DNA from: Amoeboaphelidium protococcarum X5
Lineage: Eukaryota > Fungi > Aphelidiomycota
Reading direction: 5' to 3'
NCBI GenBank assembly: GCA_023515725.1
Contig: JALDTO010000266.1
Location: forward strand, 2,250,217 to 2,314,216
DNA: 64,000 bases
The notes beneath the pieces were generated by a model. It saw only the letters and a list, made by a program, of their open reading frames with translations. It searched no databases and was not told the DNA's origin. The first letter of the stretch is position 1, and each line of letters begins with the position of its first letter. Positions 13,964 to 25,470 of this stretch are shown in pieces. Both the position numbers and the translations under genes were made by a program.

Positions 13964-14755
13964 ATGACCAAGAGTGAATTTGTTAGCAGAATGCAAGTGC
14001 TTGTGTCCAAAGAGAATGGTGATTAGCCGCTGAAACACGCGTAAGACGTGGCTGCCTCAATGAAATCAATGGACAATCTGTTCAATGCTGCTTTCACCGA
14101 GGGAATTAAGAATGAACTCAATCTATCTTATATTCTACCGCGCTTCGTCCGCATTGCCAATGAATATGATACCGACCGTATAGTGACTGCAGTGTAATGG
14201 CTGACTTCTGATTGGAAGCTGCGATCAATCATTGCTGTCGTGACTGGTGTAACCGAGCAATGGGTCGACGCCGAAGAGTTGGCGTACTTGATTACTTGCA
14301 TAGCCCGGTAGTGGAAGCCAAAATTCACTGCTGAGCTAGTGTATGCAGTGTGCATGCGATGGGAGCATGTCGGTACGTGTGAAGATGAGAAGGAGTATTC
14401 CTTGCAAGAGCAGACACAGTTTGTACTGTCAGTCATGAGGGATTGGAACTTTTTCCAAGCTAGCGCGGCGTTCATGTAACTTGGAGACAGATTACCATGG
14501 TAGATTAAAGCGGAGGTGTTCAAGGCTATACATTCGCGGCACTAGAAGAAGACATCTGTCGGATCACTGGAAGTTGACGCAGGAAATAGTGCTGAACTTA
14601 AGGGCAAGCCTAATAAAAATAACAAATCCTTGAGTAATTTGGTGGTTAAGTGTAATCAGTCGCATCGCTTCAATGGACTATTATCTCCCGATATTAACCA
14701 ACAGCCTCCAGTCGATAGTTACAAGCAGAATTTGGAGGATATAGCTGAAGAATGA
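13964..14755 (+). CDS. Hypothetical protein with periodic-Trp helical repeats (263 aa)
   Basis: Clean ATG-TGA frame under code 6. Trp recurs about every 16-17 aa in amphipathic segments. Confidence 0.7.
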
Positions 14756-16945: not shown

Positions 16946-18886
16946 ATGAGTGCCGCACCAGCTTTGGAGTTCTTGTAGCATCCAGACCTGCCTCAGCTAG
17001 TCATTTAATATCTAGAACCTCGTGATATCCATAAATTGTGCATATGTAACTCTGAGATTTGGAAATTAATGATTGCTGACCTGACTTTGCTAAAAAGTTA
17101 CTATTGGAATTACTATGGCCCTGTGCTGACTCTCTTTCGCCTGGAACACCTGCCGTATCTACTTCGTGTTGGCAACTAGAAGCCTATTAGAGCGCTGTAA
17201 GATTTATACACTGAGTTTCTACATACGCTTGAAGTACGTCGCTGCTAAGCTCTCTTGTTGTATGTCCAAACAATGGTGCGTTAGAAAAGAGCTGGTCACA
17301 CTGGCCCACTGATATAATATCTACATAAGAAATTTAGTTATGACTGGCGCGGTATATATCGTGAGATTAGGGGGTATTAATAATTTTCGAAATGGGGTTG
17401 GTCTGATTTTTATCATGAAGACGTTGAGTTGTACATGTCGAGAGGGCACATTCTGTTGTAAAATAAATCACAAATGCTACGCGTTTTGCTCAATCAGATA
17501 CGACATGATAATTGGTAATCAGTCTCTTTTACTCAATAGTTGCTTAGTTTGATATATAAAGCGAGTCCCCTGTAACTGGTGTGTTCTTATTTGCCAGTCA
17601 TGTATAGATATATGGAAGATTTATTCCTGGTGTAATGCATGTAAATTTTGGTCTTATTCTATCTTCACAATCCTGAGCTCTTTAGCTTTGATGTTGAAGC
17701 ACTAATCTATGAGCTGCTAATGGTTAAATCATTTAATAGCCCGCTGGATTGGCTGAAAATATTCGATGACCCACAGATATCTAATCATATAAGAAGTTAA
17801 GCTCTTTGGACTGTCATTATGCATTTTTAATGGGATAATTACAATCGCGTTCGTGGGGTAGTAGGGGATTTTAGATCTCATACGGATGGACTGGGTGCCC
17901 TTGTCGGCGAACTTGAACTTTAAAAGTTGACGATTTGCGATATTGATTAATTAATTACCGAATGTTCATCGTTATATCACATGATGTTCATACTGGGTCT
18001 GGGTTAGCGCCTGAAAAGTAGACAAATTGTGTTATTTTACAAGCGGGTCATCTTGAGGGCTATTGACTGTGCCACTCAGCGCCCGCATTCAGCTGCTCTA
18101 ACTGCCACTATTCTGTTCTTACCGAGGCTCGATGTGGTCAATATATAAATTAGATCGCTCGGTCAGTAATAGATTAGAACCTTATGTTTAGAGATATCTA
18201 ACTTTATAACAGGCGAAATGTATAATGAAGAAGATTCAGATCCTATAGTTTATTACAAAATTTACTCCATGCTGTTTCTGGTCAACACTTTTACCAATAC
18301 TGCTGTGCTGTAAATAGTATAACAAATGATTTCAAGTTCCTTGAGAGGTGGCAAAAATCTGGGTAAGATCATTAAGTTTTGCGTAGAGCTGTGGATTTTT
18401 GAGCCGCACATTTTGGGTCGCGTGTCACTTCGATCTCGCTATGTCTGGATGGACCAATTATTGACTGTGCTGGTGGAGCACTTTGAAGTGATAAAGTCCT
18501 AATGCGGACAATTTTCCACTGTTGTGTTTGCAACATTTTTGAAGACATGGGTCAGCGAAGACGGTTGTATGTTGATGGTGTAGACAATGCTAAAAATTTG
18601 TGATAAATACGGTTTTGACGCTGCGTAGGAAGAGGTTGACAATTTTTGCGAGCATGTCTATCTGAGACTTGAAGCTGGGTATGATATAGAGGGAAAGTAC
18701 CTGGATATGATGTAGACAGTTGAGGCGCATGTTATACCTTTGCTCTAGGAGCGAAATTTCGATGAGGAAGATTAGACGTATATCTTGCGTCGATTCTTGG
18801 TTAACAGTGATCATTATGGAGGTATTGTCTCCGAAACTGATTCGGATACTGATGGAGAAAATGGTAATGATTTTTAGGAGAAGTGA
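16946..18886 (+). CDS. F-box protein, paralog 2 (646 aa), helical C-terminal region
   Basis: Traced open frame. LEFLQHPDLPQLVIQYLEPRDIHKLCICN..WKLMIADLTLLKSYYWNYYGP is clearly homologous to paralog 1. Confidence 0.8.
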
Positions 18887-19261
18887 GTTGATTGTATTTG
18901 TGAATATGGCCATTGCCGATTGTATAATATGCTTTGCTCCTTAGTACTAAGTCTTAACGATATCTTTTGCGCTATCCTTACTATCCGCGATCATAAGTAA
19001 AAAGTTGTGCACCCAGAAATTCTATTAATTATTACTACTGGTTGTTGTGCTTCTAAAATGATATTCTTGTGAGACCTGAGATTCGTGTAACGTTTCACTA
19101 TATCCAATCTCAGTCGCACAAAGGCACTCACTCGGCTGTCAGTTCTGATTGGTCGATACATATGAGAAGTCTCACTAATCTTGGCACCATGTCTTATCGC
19201 ATTATATGAGTTATCTTTCTCCCATTATTATTAATCTTTATTTTAAAGATATAGTGGTGTG

Positions 19262-20701
19262 ATGAATAAGTTTGTGATTTTGTAAATGCTTAGCGCGATT
19301 GCTTTAACTTTTGCTGATCAGCAATAGCAGACGGCGGAAGTGGTCAAGTGTAGATTGCGTCCGGTTAGTACCACACCTTGCCCGTCCTCTGCTGCTGTAG
19401 CGCTGACTGTATCATCCTGTACCGATAGCAGCTTGGTTACTTTTATGAATAAAACCCCATCATCAAGTTACTGCTCGACCACTGCGTCTATTACTGCTGA
19501 AACAACCTCTTGCACTACTGTGGCGTCAACCACGATTATACCTCCAGCTGTATGGACTTCCTCTGCCTGCTCTACCACATCCACTGATGTTCAAGAAACC
19601 ATCTCTACCTCTACCAGAATATATTCTTCCTACACAAGCACGTCTAAATAAGTGAATACTCTGAGTACTCCCGGAATATCATCCAGTCGCGTGTCCTCAA
19701 CGACCGTCCTTACGAGCTCTGTAGTATCCTCTTAGTCGTCGTCTACTAAAACTTTGACCACGACTACTGCAACTAGATAAACTCCTAAAATCCCACCAGT
19801 AGCTCCACCTCCTCCTCCTTCTCCATAACCTCCGTCCTCTCCACCGCCGCCGGTTATCCCAACTCCTCCTATTTCGCAGCCGCCACCTTCGAATCCTCCT
19901 ATTCCTTAACCTCCTGCTTAACCACCTACTCCAACTCCTACTTCATCACCTGCTAAACCTCCTGCTTCGACACCAACTTCTCCTCCTGTCACTCCGCCAA
20001 CTCCAACTCCTCCTCCTGTCAAGCCTCCTACTCCAACTCCAACTCCGCCTACTCCTTCTCCACCTCCAATTAGCCCTAAACCAATACCAGGATAAACACC
20101 GCAACCTCCATCTAATCAGGGATTTTGTTTGAACCGTCCCAATAAAAGATGTAGCCCTCTGGTGTTTGATTTAAATAATGATGGTGTGGTTAGTGCCAAG
20201 CGCGGTGTTGGCATTTCATTTAACCACGAAGATATTGATCAGCATGTTGGGGCTGCCACAGGTGGCGACAAGATGTTAGCAATGTCTGATACTAATTAAA
20301 ATGGGGTCATTGATAGCCAGGAGGTGTTTGGCGATAGAACAATAAGCCCTCTCACTAAGAAGCCATACTAGGCACGTAATGGCTTTGAAGCGTTGAAAAT
20401 GCTCGTGTCTGAATTGTCGCCGATATGTGGTAATCTTTACATTGACAAGATTGGCACCTATGTAGATACTGATAAATTAAGAGGGTGTCTGAAGCAGATT
20501 GGCTCCGATCTAGGATTCATCAGTGATAGCAATGTACGCGTACTTGAAGATTTGGGTGATGTACTAGCCATTAATGTGGCTGATTATATCGACTCGCCTG
20601 AAGATAATCAAGACGGTATAGGACACTACTAAAAGAGTGTCTTTCTAGATCGCCTCGGTCGCAAACGTAAAGTTGATGATGTTTGGTTCAGAAAACGTTG
20701 A
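19262..20701 (+). CDS. Secreted Ser/Thr- and Pro-rich protein with C-terminal FrpC self-processing-module-like Ca2+-binding domain, copy 1 (479 aa)
   Basis: Signal peptide MNKFVILQMLSAIALTFA, S/T stalk, Pro-rich rod, then from 20153 SPLVFDLNNDGV...GDKMLAMSDTNQNGVIDSQEVFGDRT...ARNGFEAL...VLEDLG...VDDVWF. Frame traced codon by codon. Confidence 0.85.
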
Positions 20702-20795
20702 ATGCTGTTATAATAAACAATAATCATTTGTAAACTACTTAACTCAATCTATTACTGATGAATTCTTTTATAGTTCCACTGTTCTAACTAGTAAT

Positions 20796-21136
20796 TCAAT
20801 TTTACTAGAACCAGTTCAGAGAATCTTACAGGCAGCGCTCACCTGCTCCGATCCAGAGAACATGGTCGCCATTCTCATATAAAATGATCGACTTTTACGC
20901 GTCTGACAGGCGTGCACATCTTCTAACAAGCTCTTTAGATCCCTCAACATCCGTGACTAAATCATTCAATCCATGGCAAGCGAGAAATGGAACATCAATA
21001 TCCCCCAATTTCGATTACAGTTCAGTCATTCCTTCGAGGGAGACATTCCAGTGCCAACGCGAAGTCATCCAGTGTAAGTACCTACATCCGCTTTAAATCT
21101 CTCCTCCACAGATGGATCAACATGATTTTTACCTTT
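20796..21136 (-). pseudogene. Truncated 3' copy of the monoglyceride lipase gene
   Basis: Near-identical to 24147-24488 but lacks the 5' two-thirds, has TGG>TGA at 21065-21067 and a 1-nt deletion near 21040. Confidence 0.9.
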
Positions 21137-21333
21137 TAATAGGAAAGTAGTAGAGTTTGATGAATGATATTCAATTTATTATTAGAATACAAGATCACTG
21201 TTCAATCCATGGCTGGCCATTTCACCATCGTATACGTTCCAGGCTCTCGGGTGTGCCACATTTCTCAGACTCTATGCTAATCCACATATAGATTCTCACA
21301 GTCTAGTGTGATCATATTCTGATAAGGTGAAAG

Positions 21334-22040
21334 CCTTATGCTTCGAGCTATCTAACTTAATTACTGGCGAAATGCGTAATGAAGAAGATTCAGATCCTGT
21401 AGTTTATTACAAAATTTACTCCATGCTATTTCTGTTCAATACTTTTACTAATAACGCTGTGCTGTAAATAGCATAACAACTGATTGTAAGTTCATTGAGA
21501 GGTGATAAAAATCTGGGAAAGATTATTAAGTCTTGCGTAGAGCTGTGGATTTTTGAGCCGCACATTTTGGATCGCGTGTCACTTCGATCTCGCTATGTCT
21601 GGATGGACCAATTATTGACTGTGCTGGTGGAGCACTTTGAAGTGATAAAGTCCTAATGCGGACAATTCTCTACTGCAGTGTTTGCAACGTTCTTGAAGAC
21701 ATGGGTTAGCGAAGACGGTTGTCTCTCGATGGTGTAGACAATGCTTAAAATTTGTGATAAATACGGTTTTGACGCTGCGTAGGAAGAGGTTGACAATTTC
21801 TGCGAGCACGTCTATCTGAGACTTGAAGCTGGGCATGATCTAGAGGGAAGGTACCTGGATATGATGAAGACGGTTGAGGCGCATGTTAAAACTCTGCTTC
21901 AGGAACGGGGCGATAACGAAGATGATTAGACGGATATCTTATGGCGATTCTTAGTAAACAGCCAGCATTATGGAGGTGTTGACTTGGAAATTGATTAGCA
22001 TACTGATGGAGAAAGTGTTGACGACTAGGATGAGAAGTGA
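21334..22040 (+). pseudogene. 5'-truncated copy of F-box paralog 2 (C-terminal third)
   Basis: Highly similar to 18181-18886. No F-box upstream, and an in-frame TGA lies just upstream. Confidence 0.85.
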
Positions 22041-22410
22041 ATTTATCGTGATTTAAATACTTTCTGGCTGACCGTTCTTAACGTCTTGCACTTAGTACTA
22101 AGTTATATAACGAGGTCTTTTGCACTGATCTTAGTATCCGCATCGCCAGTAAATTGTTATTCAGCCAGGAAGTACTTTCATATTTTCAACAGGTGTTGGT
22201 ATTACTGAGCTGATATTCTTTTGAGGCCTGAGATTCGTGTAACGTTTCACCTTCCAATCTCAGTCGCACAAAGATACTTGGCGATCAGCTCTGATTGGTC
22301 GTTTTATATGAGAAGTCTCACTAATCTTGGCATTATGTCTGATGGCATTATATGAGTTTTTTCACTCCCGCAATAATTTTTTTTGTTTAGAGTATAGAAA
22401 TAGTTGTGTG

Positions 22411-24051
22411 ATGAATAAGTTTGCGATTTTATAATTGCTTACCGCGATTGCTTTCACGATTGCCGCCGAGAAATATCGTACGACGGAAGTGGTCAAATGT
22501 AGATTGCGTCCTGTTAGTAGTACACCTTGCACGTCCTCTACTGCTGTACCTTTGACTGTAACATCATGTACCGATAGTAGCTTATCAACACCTGTGAATA
22601 AAACGCCATAATCATGTGACTGCTCGAGCACTGCATCTGTTACTGTTGAGACAACTCCTTGTAGCACAGTGGCGTCAACTACGATTATGCCTCCAGCTGT
22701 ATAGACTTCCTCTGATTGCTCTACCACATCCACTGATGTGCCAAAATCTATCTCCACCTCTACTAGAGTATATTCTGTCTAGACAAGCAGTACTAAACAA
22801 GTGAACACTCAGAGTACTCCGGGGATAACGTCAAGTCGCTCATCCTCAATGATTGTCTTAACGAGCACTGTAGTATCCTCGAAGTCGTCTTCTACTAAAA
22901 TTCTGACTACCCCTACTGCAAGTACATCAACTCTTAAGATAACCACTACATAGACTCCTGGAATCCCACCAGTAGCTCCACCTCCTCCTCCTTCTCCATA
23001 ACCTCCGTCCTCTCCACCGCCGCCGGTTATCCCAACTCCTCCTATTTCGCAGCCGCCACCTTCGAATCCTCCTACTCCAACTCCCCCGCCGGTTAAACCT
23101 CCTGCTCCGACACCAACTCCTACTTCACCACCTGCTAAACCTCCTACTCCAACACCAACTCCTCCTCCAGTCAAGCCTCCTACTCCGACTCCTACTCCAC
23201 CCCCAGCTAAGCCTCCTACTTCTACTACTGTGAAGCCTCCTACTCCAACTCCCCCGCCGGTTAAGCCTCCTGCTCCGACACCAACTCCTACTTCACCACC
23301 TGCTAAACCTCCTACTCCAACACCAACTCCTCCTCCAGTCAAGCCTCCTACTCCGACTCCTACTCCGCCTACTCCTTCTCCACCTCCACCTTCACCGCCA
23401 CCTCCACCTCCACCTTCACCGCCACCTCCACCTCCACCTGTTCCGCCATCGCGACGTCCATCTAGTTAGGGATATTGTCCGAATCGTCCTAATAAAAAAT
23501 GTAGTCCTCTGGTGTTTGATTTAAATAATGATGGTGTTGTTAGTGCTAAACGTGGAGTTGGCATTTCATTTAACCACGAAGACATTGATCAGCATGTTGG
23601 TGCGGCCACAGGTGGCGACAAGATGTTAGCAATGTCTGATATTAATTAAAATGGGGTCATTGATAGCCAGGAGGTGTTTGGCGATAGAACAATAAGCCCT
23701 CTCACTAAGAAGCCATACTAGGCACGTAATGGCTTTGAAGCGTTGAAAATGCTCGTGTCTGAATTGTCGCCGATATGTGGTAATCTTTACATTGACAAGA
23801 TTGGCACCTATGTAGATACTGATAAATTAAGAGGGTGTCTGAAGCAGATTGGCTCCGATCTAGGATTCATCAGTGATAGCAATGTACGCGTACTTGAAGA
23901 TTTGGGTGATGTACTAGCCGTTAATGTGTCTGATTATATTGACACGCCTGAAGATAATTAAAACGGTATAGGTCACTACTAAAAGAGTGACTTTCTAGAT
24001 CGCCTCGGTCGCAAACGTAAAGTTGATGATGTTTGGTTTAGAAAACGTTGA
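22411..24051 (+). CDS. Secreted Ser/Thr- and Pro-rich protein with FrpC SPM-like domain, copy 2 (546 aa)
   Basis: Same architecture as copy 1 with a longer Pro rod and SPPPP runs. The SPM-like domain starts at 23503. Confidence 0.85.
23071..23366 (+). repeat. Intragenic direct repeat (168-nt period, ~128-nt match) in the Pro-rich rod
   Basis: 23071-23198 is almost identical to 23239-23366 (PTPTPPPVKPPAPTPTPTSPPAKPPTPTPTPPPVKPPTPTPTP). Confidence 0.9.
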
Positions 24052-24146
24052 ATGCTGTTAAAATAAACAATAATCATTTGTAAACTACTTACTCAATCTA
24101 TTATTTGATGAATTCTTTTAGAGTACCCACTGTACTATTTGGTAAT

Positions 24147-25127
24147 TCAATTTTACTAGAACCAGTTCAGAGAATCTTACAGGCAGCGCTCACCTGCTCC
24201 GATCCAGAGAACATGATCGCCATTCTCATATAGAATGATCGACTTTTAAGAGTCTGACAGCCGTGCACATCTTCTAACAAGCTCTTTAGATCCCTCAACA
24301 TCCGTGACTAAATCATTCGATCCATGGCAAGCGAGAAATGGAACATCAATATCTTCCAATTTCGATTACAGTTCAGTCATTCCTTCGAGGAGAGACATTC
24401 CTGTGCCAACGCGAAGCCATCCAGTATAAGTACCGACATCCGCTTTGAATCTCTCCTCCACAGATGGATCAACATGATTTTTACCTTTATTCGCTGGCGA
24501 TGCAGCCAGAGTCGGCGCAAGATATCTAAGTACGTATGCTGCATACTTTAATACAGAGTTGGGTGTAGACGCGGGATGAGATCTAATCAGGGGACAAAAT
24601 AACACCATACCGGATAGATCTGGAGATGATACGGGAACCAACTCTTTCCGCTTCAAAGTGTACAGCAGCGATATCAAACCGCCCATCGAGGCAGACAATA
24701 GATAATATTTGCAATCAGGTAGATCTTTAATTGTTTCAAGAAACACATTGTGCAAAGTGTTGGTCAACACATCCATAGATTCAATGTAACCGTGCAGACC
24801 ATCGCTTCGACCAGTGCCGGGGTGATCATATGCCACCACCGTGAATCCTGCATCCAAATACACCTAAGCTCTATGAGCAAATCTGCCGCCATAGTCGCCC
24901 ATACCAGCAACAAATATAATCACTTTGCCGCAATCTAATTCTTTCGCGGGTTTCCAGTATTACATGTACACGGAGTCATCACAGATATACTTCTCTACGC
25001 GCTCAACATCGGGACGCTACTCGAGAATCTACTCACCTTCCGTAAGAGGTAGTGATCTAGATGTATGACTTTTTCTCGCAAATATCTTGGTTGACTGTAA
25101 ACTATCTTGACTGCTAATTTCGCTCAT
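24147..25127 (-). CDS. Monoglyceride lipase / lysophospholipase, alpha-beta hydrolase (Hydrolase_4, Yju3-like; 326 aa)
   Basis: GFTVVAYDHPGTGRSDGLHGYI; nucleophile elbow LSASMGG; Asp in HGSNDLVT; His in YENGDHVL. Confidence 0.9.
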
Positions 25128-25470
25128 ATCTGATCTTATTTACAATTTGATTTCTAATCAGTGATAAGTAAAAAAATAAAAGATCAGGGGAATTGTACCA
25201 ATGAATACATTTCAACTGCTATATAATCATGTCAAACGAAAAGTCACGATCTCATACTTTGTAAAGATGCTTCAATTTATTGATACTACATCTAAATAAT
25301 CAATCTAATAACATATTCGTTACTTCTATACTATGGTGACCTTCTAATCACGATGATCAATTCATGTTTGATCTTAATTCTTTGTCATCATCATCATCGT
25401 CTCTCCTTTCTCTAGTCTTCTAAACGCGATATATCAGTACTTGATTAGGTGCGTCATAATTATCAGAAGA

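Follow-up and report, generated by a model that had tools for sequence, protein, structure and literature searches.

In this study, we describe two genes, here called G1 and G2, that lie in a stretch of 64,000 nucleotides (the window) from the aphelid Amoeboaphelidium protococcarum X5, which parasitises green algae (contig JALDTO010000266.1, positions 2,250,217 to 2,314,216 of the forward strand), and we show that both encode proteins ending in a homologue of the Neisseria FrpC protein's self-processing module (SPM). Reading frames were translated with table 6, in which TAA and TAG (TAR) are read as Gln and TGA is the stop. An earlier note on this DNA had proposed two intronless genes masked by TAR=Gln, each encoding a putative signal peptide, a Ser/Thr-rich stalk, a Pro-rich rod and a C-terminal domain of about 182 amino acids (aa). 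Under this code the frames 19262-20701 and 22411-24051 are indeed uninterrupted, that architecture is present in both, the proposed domain limits (20153-20698 and 23503-24048) are exact, and the motifs quoted for the domain are found in the sequence. The features of the two genes, in positions of the window, are as follows.

19262..20701, plus strand: G1 coding sequence, 479 aa, 12 in-frame TAR codons, intronless, TGA stop
19262..19315, plus strand: G1 putative signal peptide, aa 1-18, basic start, hydrophobic core and small residues at -3/-1, inferred from sequence
19346..19792, plus strand: G1 KCRLR motif and Ser/Thr-rich, Cys-containing stalk, Ser plus Thr 50%
19793..20113, plus strand: G1 Pro-rich rod, Pro 53%
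20153..20158, plus strand: Ser298-Pro299 of G1, counterpart of FrpC Asp414-Pro415, Ser codon AGC
20153..20698, plus strand: G1 SPM-fold domain, Ser298-Arg479, with Ca loops 1 and 2 and the D478/D579 equivalents retained
22411..24051, plus strand: G2 coding sequence, 546 aa, 11 in-frame TAR codons, intronless, TGA stop
22411..22464, plus strand: G2 putative signal peptide, aa 1-18, inferred from sequence
22495..22965, plus strand: G2 KCRLR motif and Ser/Thr-rich stalk, Ser plus Thr 48%
22966..23463, plus strand: G2 Pro-rich rod, Pro 58%, with a 138-nt near-exact repeat inside
23503..23508, plus strand: Ser365-Pro366 of G2, counterpart of FrpC Asp414-Pro415, Ser codon AGT
23503..24048, plus strand: G2 SPM-fold domain, Ser365-Arg546, differing from that of G1 at 6 aa

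The C-terminal 182 aa of G1 and G2 are a true homologue of the FrpC SPM and belong to the PF26745 fold family. The G1 domain alone gave no FrpC match in phmmer, and the homology therefore rests on a paralogue, on profiles and on structure. Stop-free pieces of G1 and G2 had weak EF-hand matches in a copy of Pfam searched without PF26745 and none in the PDB, and an NCBIfam search gave no significant match. A paralogue whose domain contains no TAR codon (L026) matches the FrpC SPM (6SJW) from end to end at E 1.8e-8, and a profile of 99 family sequences matches the FrpC SPM at E 5.2e-7. Profile-profile alignment joins the family to canonical SPMs with a probability of 99.8% and E 1.9e-28, and those canonical SPMs match FrpC at E 2.9e-60. 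The AlphaFold (AF2) model of the G1 domain has a predicted local distance difference test score of 94.8. Its significant Foldseek matches are 6SJX (template modeling score 0.61) and 6SJW (0.56), with probability 1.0, and no other structure; against 48,161 representative chains it aligns to 6SJW with Z 14.0 and a root-mean-square deviation of 3.1 A over 143 residues, the next chain having Z 3.3. The end-to-end homology claimed in the earlier note is thus borne out by the paralogue, by both kinds of profile and by the comparison of a model with the FrpC structure that it had proposed.

With the SPM of FrpC and ApxIVA (PDB 6SJW, 6SJX) the aphelid domain has in common the fold, the N-terminal Pro strand, the Ca loops D419-G424 and D462-E474, the D478/D579 equivalents, G477, G491 and a location at the junction that follows a passenger region. 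Unlike it, the aphelid domain has Ser or Cys for the scissile Asp414, lacks W451 and W519, and carries a helical insert with a Cys pair in place of the Ca loops 499-511 and 521-532. It is also C-terminal, without RTX repeats or a type I secretion signal, and is joined to a putative eukaryotic signal peptide and a glycoprotein-like stalk in a family of 27 paralogues. In the sequence alignment, the predicted Ca site D419-D421-D423-G424 is kept as D303, N305, D307 and G308 of G1, and the predicted site D462-E474 as D343, N345, N347, D351 and E354; FrpC D456 aligns to Lys, and the adjacent Asp is invariant. The equivalents of D478 and D579 are D358 and D473 in G1 and, across the family, D/N and D. 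P415, G477, D/N478, G491 and D579 are near-invariant, and roles near the cleavage site have been described for these residues in FrpC (PMC7078468). The two lost loops, out of four EF loops, have left only their last Glu, and the Cys pair of the insert (Cys389/Cys409 in G1), invariant in 27/27 paralogues, presumably forms a disulfide. Both Trp are invariant in canonical SPMs, whereas in the aphelid members and in those of Vampirovibrionia type W451 is replaced by Ala or Gly and no Trp stands at W519.

The question is whether the domain still processes itself. In the FrpC reaction, an amide is twisted by Ca2+ and Asp414 attacks its own carbonyl through its side-chain carboxyl, leaving an anhydride (PMC7078468), and the D414A substitution abolishes both cleavage and coupling (PMC7846742). 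The residue before Pro is Ser in 21 and Cys in 6 of the 27 aphelid paralogues, and Asp in none; the residue at -2 in G1 and G2 is Cys, not Asp. Because the Asp414 equivalent is Ser or Cys in G1, G2 and all 27 family members, clip-and-link through an Asp-anhydride is excluded. Ca2+-induced formation of Asp-Lys isopeptide bonds by G1 and G2 is predicted to be absent, and any self-cutting would have to use another chemistry. The Ser codons before Pro in the aphelid family belong to both codon families (AGY 11, TCN 10), as they do in bacteria.

A survey of this residue in bacterial SPMs and the pattern that it reveals are new here. Among 203 bacterial domains, the position before Pro is occupied by Ser in 143, Asp in 45, Thr in 11, Cys in 3 and Phe in 1, in a sample of related sequences seeded by Ser-type queries, so that the Ser:Asp ratio is biased and is no census. 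For 119 of the 203 the collecting profile began at the Pro, so the column before it was unscored. Asn, Ala and Gly were found before Pro in none of the 203 bacterial domains (0/203) and in none of the aphelid paralogues (0/27), and 17 different residues occur at the next position upstream. On the tree, the residue switched between Asp and non-Asp on at least eight occasions, and intermediates were not observed. Since Cys is allowed and Asn is absent, a side-chain nucleophile fits better than a turn cap or a Ca ligand, and a nucleophile is what the residue looks like in these alignments. The survey also suggests that the Asp form of FrpC is a minority among SPMs: most of the sampled bacterial homologues have Ser, Thr or Cys at FrpC's reactive Asp, and the characterised chemistry may thus be the minority case.

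Our best guess, to which we give a probability of about 0.45, is a Ser/Cys-based self-cleavage during secretion. G1 and G2 would be secreted, soluble, mucin- or extensin-like proteins in which the putative signal peptide is followed by the KCRLR motif, the Ser/Thr stalk, the Pro rod and the SPM-fold head. The head would fold on Ca2+ in the endoplasmic reticulum (ER), the Ser or Cys before Pro having been retained as a side-chain nucleophile. The strain that the folded head puts on the junction would lead to a cut in the chain, an N-to-O/S acyl shift at the bond immediately preceding Ser/Cys being the most plausible route. As a maturation step of a glycoprotein of the surface or cyst coat, such a cut would part stalk from head or leave the two held together non-covalently. 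This reading is favored because the residue before Pro is, one Phe apart, constrained to Ser, Thr, Cys or Asp and the residues of the site are conserved; because the ratio of non-synonymous to synonymous substitution rates (dN/dS) is 0.05-0.12 in the domain against 0.4-0.5 in the stalk; and because SPM fusions passing through the mammalian secretory pathway are already partly cleaved there (PMC12538545).

A functional analogy, and no more than that, exists in animals, where cleavage takes place in a similar setting. The SEA and GAIN domains of mucins and adhesion receptors are cut by an N-to-O/S acyl shift just before Ser/Thr(/Cys), at a site that ends a glycosylated stalk, is driven by folding and is processed in the secretory pathway. 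The aphelid junction likewise has Ser or Cys at the end of a stalk, cleavage there being hypothetical. The SEA and GAIN folds are unrelated to that of the SPM and the proteins are membrane-anchored, unlike G1 and G2, in which neither a transmembrane segment nor a GPI-like tail (a glycosylphosphatidylinositol anchor signal) was found. The GPS motif is given as H-X-S/T (PMC13062082).

Several points weigh against self-cleavage. The twisted amide of FrpC follows residue 414, and a Ser at that place would need a strained four-membered ring; an acyl shift would in turn require strain one bond before the amide that is twisted in FrpC. Ca loops 3-4 and both Trp (W451, W519) are missing, and among the eukaryotic homologues two divergent ones (P0108, P0052) lack the nucleophile or the Pro. 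The seeding of the residue survey counts here as well. In the literature we found no experiment on a Ser-, Thr- or Cys-Pro SPM, and RNA runs were sought and none found.

The most serious competitor, which we rate as quite possible while still putting it below even odds, is a non-cleaving, Ca2+- and disulfide-stabilised SPM-fold head that acts as the binding or assembly tip of a glycosylated stalk, in adhesion to the algal wall or in a cyst or tube coat, and in which the Ser or Cys before Pro is structural, as a turn cap or through a hydrogen bond. It accords with the missing scissile Asp in 27/27 paralogues, with the effect of D414A in FrpC (PMC7846742) and with the normal Ca2+-induced folding of a non-cleavable FrpC SPM (PMC7078468). 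The invariant new Cys pair that takes the place of two Ca loops, the loss of the site in some eukaryotic homologues and a stalk-plus-head build that would be typical of surface adhesins point the same way. However, it leaves unexplained why Cys is present before Pro and Asn, Ala and Gly are not, and why the residues around the cleavage site are near-invariant. Should it be right, most SPM-fold domains might be non-cleaving Ca2+ modules.

A bolder extension of the self-cleavage reading is that Ser/Thr/Cys-Pro SPMs are active through an ester or thioester, an intermediate that could in principle cross-link, and that the aphelids multiplied one such module as a covalent glue for zoospore attachment or cyst assembly. 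On the sequences at hand we regard this as doubtful. If true, an ester/thioester clip-and-link would give the SPM fold a second chemistry and its first eukaryotic use, and a second self-processing chemistry would be relevant to protein-ligation tools such as NeissLock. The glue envisaged in the earlier note, made by FrpC-type Ca2+-triggered Asp-Pro cleavage and anhydride cross-linking of the stalk to lysines, is very improbable: the fold and several Ca ligands are kept and 23/84 proteins of the nearest bacterial subfamily have Asp-Pro, but the published nucleophile is the D414 side chain, and neither G1, G2 nor any paralogue has Asp at the site. The extracellular Ca2+ switch proposed with it is doubtful too, since Ca2+ is encountered as early as the ER by an SPM that travels through a eukaryotic secretory pathway (PMC12538545); folding of the head would probably take place there, and it would not be switched on at the host surface. 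Adhesion or coat assembly is a plausible setting for the family, given that aphelid zoospores attach, encyst and pierce the wall of the alga with an infection tube (PMC3975115). In the aphelids, the sister group of fungi, the 27 secreted SPM-fold proteins are concrete candidates for attachment to, and encystment on, algae.

With regard to origin, the SPM-fold identity and bacterial origin of the head are in our view highly probable. An exhaustive search returned 266 cluster representatives, and nearest after the aphelid proteins are about 100 with the same C-terminal variant. In a collection of species genomes, the nearest bacterial kin belong mainly to Gastranaerophilales, with single genomes of Vampirovibrionales and Caenarcanales, which agrees with the earlier suggestion that Vampirovibrionia are possible donors. 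Two matching genomes carry the NCBI label 'Gammaproteobacteria'; the label was rejected, since they fall in the class Vampirovibrionia or the order Gastranaerophilales. Other labels among the matches are 'Muribaculaceae' and 'Desulfobacteraceae'. These bacterial proteins are 41-50% identical to the G1 domain over its length and, like it, have lost both Trp and Ca loops 3-4, place the domain at the C-terminus and mostly have Ser-Pro. In contrast to the aphelid proteins they lack a signal peptide, their N-terminal regions are rich in Gly, Asn and Thr instead of forming Ser/Thr and Pro stalks, about one quarter have Asp-Pro, and the second aphelid Cys is mostly absent. Asp-Pro and Ser-Pro forms occur together within single Gastranaerophilales genomes, and some genomes of this order (L073, L076, L082) contain tandem arrays of 2-4 genes ending in an SPM-like domain, an expansion independent of the aphelid one.

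The head is also carried by other eukaryotes. Metagenomic eukaryotic copies adjoin genes for RPC2, L7e, an intraflagellar transport (IFT) protein and Brr6; they use TAA and TAG as stops (standard code), and have the stalk and the KCR motif in common with the aphelid family. One such eukaryote (run SRR28148137, L058-L060) is flagellated and has no fewer than three family members, among them one whose stalk exceeds 850 aa. The best credible named relative of its L7e is A. protococcarum, and its RPC2 scores higher against the A. protococcarum genome than against yeast or human; therefore, this eukaryote probably represents a further aphelid-like holomycotan. All eukaryotic sequences form one clade (Shimodaira-Hasegawa-like approximate likelihood ratio test, SH-aLRT, 98-99), which the Vampirovibrionia-type subfamily joins to the exclusion of canonical SPMs (SH-aLRT 99-100). 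The free tree suggested nesting of the eukaryotes inside Vampirovibrionia; the approximately unbiased (AU) test, on a tree that left out nine long or compositionally odd rows, did not reject a topology in which the bacterial subfamily is held together with the eukaryotes as its sister (p=0.745). Of the horizontal acquisition proposed in the earlier note, the bacterial affinity and the integration in the host code stand, and the eukaryotic clade may be nested in the Vampirovibrionia-type subfamily or be sister to it. Because the SPM is broad in bacteria, transfer from bacteria to eukaryotes is the economical reading, and we infer donor and direction accordingly as a passage from relatives of the Vampirovibrionia subfamily into an ancestor common to A. 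protococcarum and other, standard-code aphelid-like eukaryotes.

It is unlikely that no Vampirovibrionia-to-eukaryote transfer took place and that the donor was instead another, unsampled bacterium, or that it was the subfamily that passed from aphelid-like eukaryotes to Vampirovibrionia. The unrejected sister topology would allow either course, as would the patchiness of the subfamily (3/151 Vampirovibrionia class genomes and 23/401 Gastranaerophilales genomes) and two copies in a bin labelled Desulfobacteraceae. Against them, the eukaryotic matches are confined to one narrow clade, the bacterial copies sit among bacterial genes, and none of the 20 top matches that were looked up by name was a named protein of fungi, animals or plants. 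That bacterial DNA was joined to an aphelid scaffold by contamination or mis-assembly has next to no probability, for although no single public contig carries the whole stretch, each gene has 11-12 in-frame TAR=Gln codons, 27 copies are spread over 8 contigs, the genes around them are eukaryotic or of common housekeeping type (MYST acetyltransferase, EF2), in other samples contigs extend from the flank upstream into G1 and G2 and link the G2 domain with the hydrolase gene downstream, and the homologues of other eukaryotes adjoin eukaryotic genes as well. The contiguity with eukaryotic neighbours on which the earlier note depended is thereby confirmed. We found no paper joining aphelids and the SPM and none that mentions the eukaryotic, Ser/Cys-Pro, Trp-less SPM family, a variant of the known module; new here are the other eukaryotic carriers, the nesting test and the analysis of selection and conversion in the G1-G2 pair.

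G1 and G2 had been regarded as a gene pair; a search of the genome itself places them in a family of 27 members on 8 contigs. Within the window they lie in a tandem duplication, the parts of which are given below together with a tract of identity between the two domains.

18180..21136, no strand: tandem duplication unit 1, comprising the 3' part of the upstream gene, G1 and a duplicate of the hydrolase gene's 3' end
21334..24488, no strand: tandem duplication unit 2, comprising a copy of the 3' part of the upstream gene, G2 and the 3' end of the hydrolase gene
21146..21325, no strand: dispersed repeat of about 180 bp at the duplication junction, one of 7 long copies in the genome
20293..20569, no strand: 277-bp tract identical to 23643-23919, probable gene conversion

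The two domains differ at 6 residues, where 6-7 had been counted, and the N-terminal stalks diverge more, being 72% identical. The dN/dS of the domain is 0.12 between G1 and G2, and comparisons with the contig C154 copy give 0.05 and 0.08; that of the N-terminal stalk is 0.41-0.52. Within the 277-bp tract that G1 and G2 share, the contig C154 copy has many synonymous differences, and this tract is probably the result of gene conversion. Purifying selection or gene conversion had been offered as explanations for the similarity of the domains; in view of the low dN/dS and the identical tract, both seem to apply.

The junction repeat (21146-21325) is 86-93% identical to the six other long genomic copies and may have mediated the tandem duplication. 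On its left side, 20776-21136 is a duplicated 3' fragment (95%) of the Hydrolase_4 alpha/beta-hydrolase gene (24147-25157, minus strand). Upstream, between 13913 and 18886 of the window, the open reading frames at 14634 and 16841 start with similar F-box-like N-termini, an apparent local gene family, and a tested piece of these N-termini had no Pfam match; 21334-22040 is a copied 3' fragment of the last gene of this family.

The KCRL(R) motif lies about 10 residues past the putative signal peptide (19346-19360 in G1, 22495-22509 in G2) and is kept in 22/27 paralogues; in homologues from other eukaryotes (L058, L147) it is repeated as KCRPR/KCRLR. It is possibly a disulfide-linking or sorting motif. 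Across the genome its codon pattern occurs 104 times against 112 in the control, which is chance level, and therefore it is unusable for finding other families.

TAR=Gln is required not only by G1 and G2 but also by the EF2, FAD-binding (SdhA-like), MYST acetyltransferase, GARS and Hydrolase_4 genes of the window. The annotated NCBI protein P0157, which clusters with A. protococcarum KAI3652787.1, is identical to G1 from Met9, its second Met, onward. This annotated start cuts into the putative signal peptide, and the real start is probably at 19262; Met1 is common to G1, G2 and the copy on contig C154. In two other samples, loose contig ends at 19721-19723 and at 22172-22175 are mutual reverse complements, which suggests that inverted-repeat DNA elements are inserted at these places in other strains, where the first would interrupt G1 and the second would lie upstream of G2.

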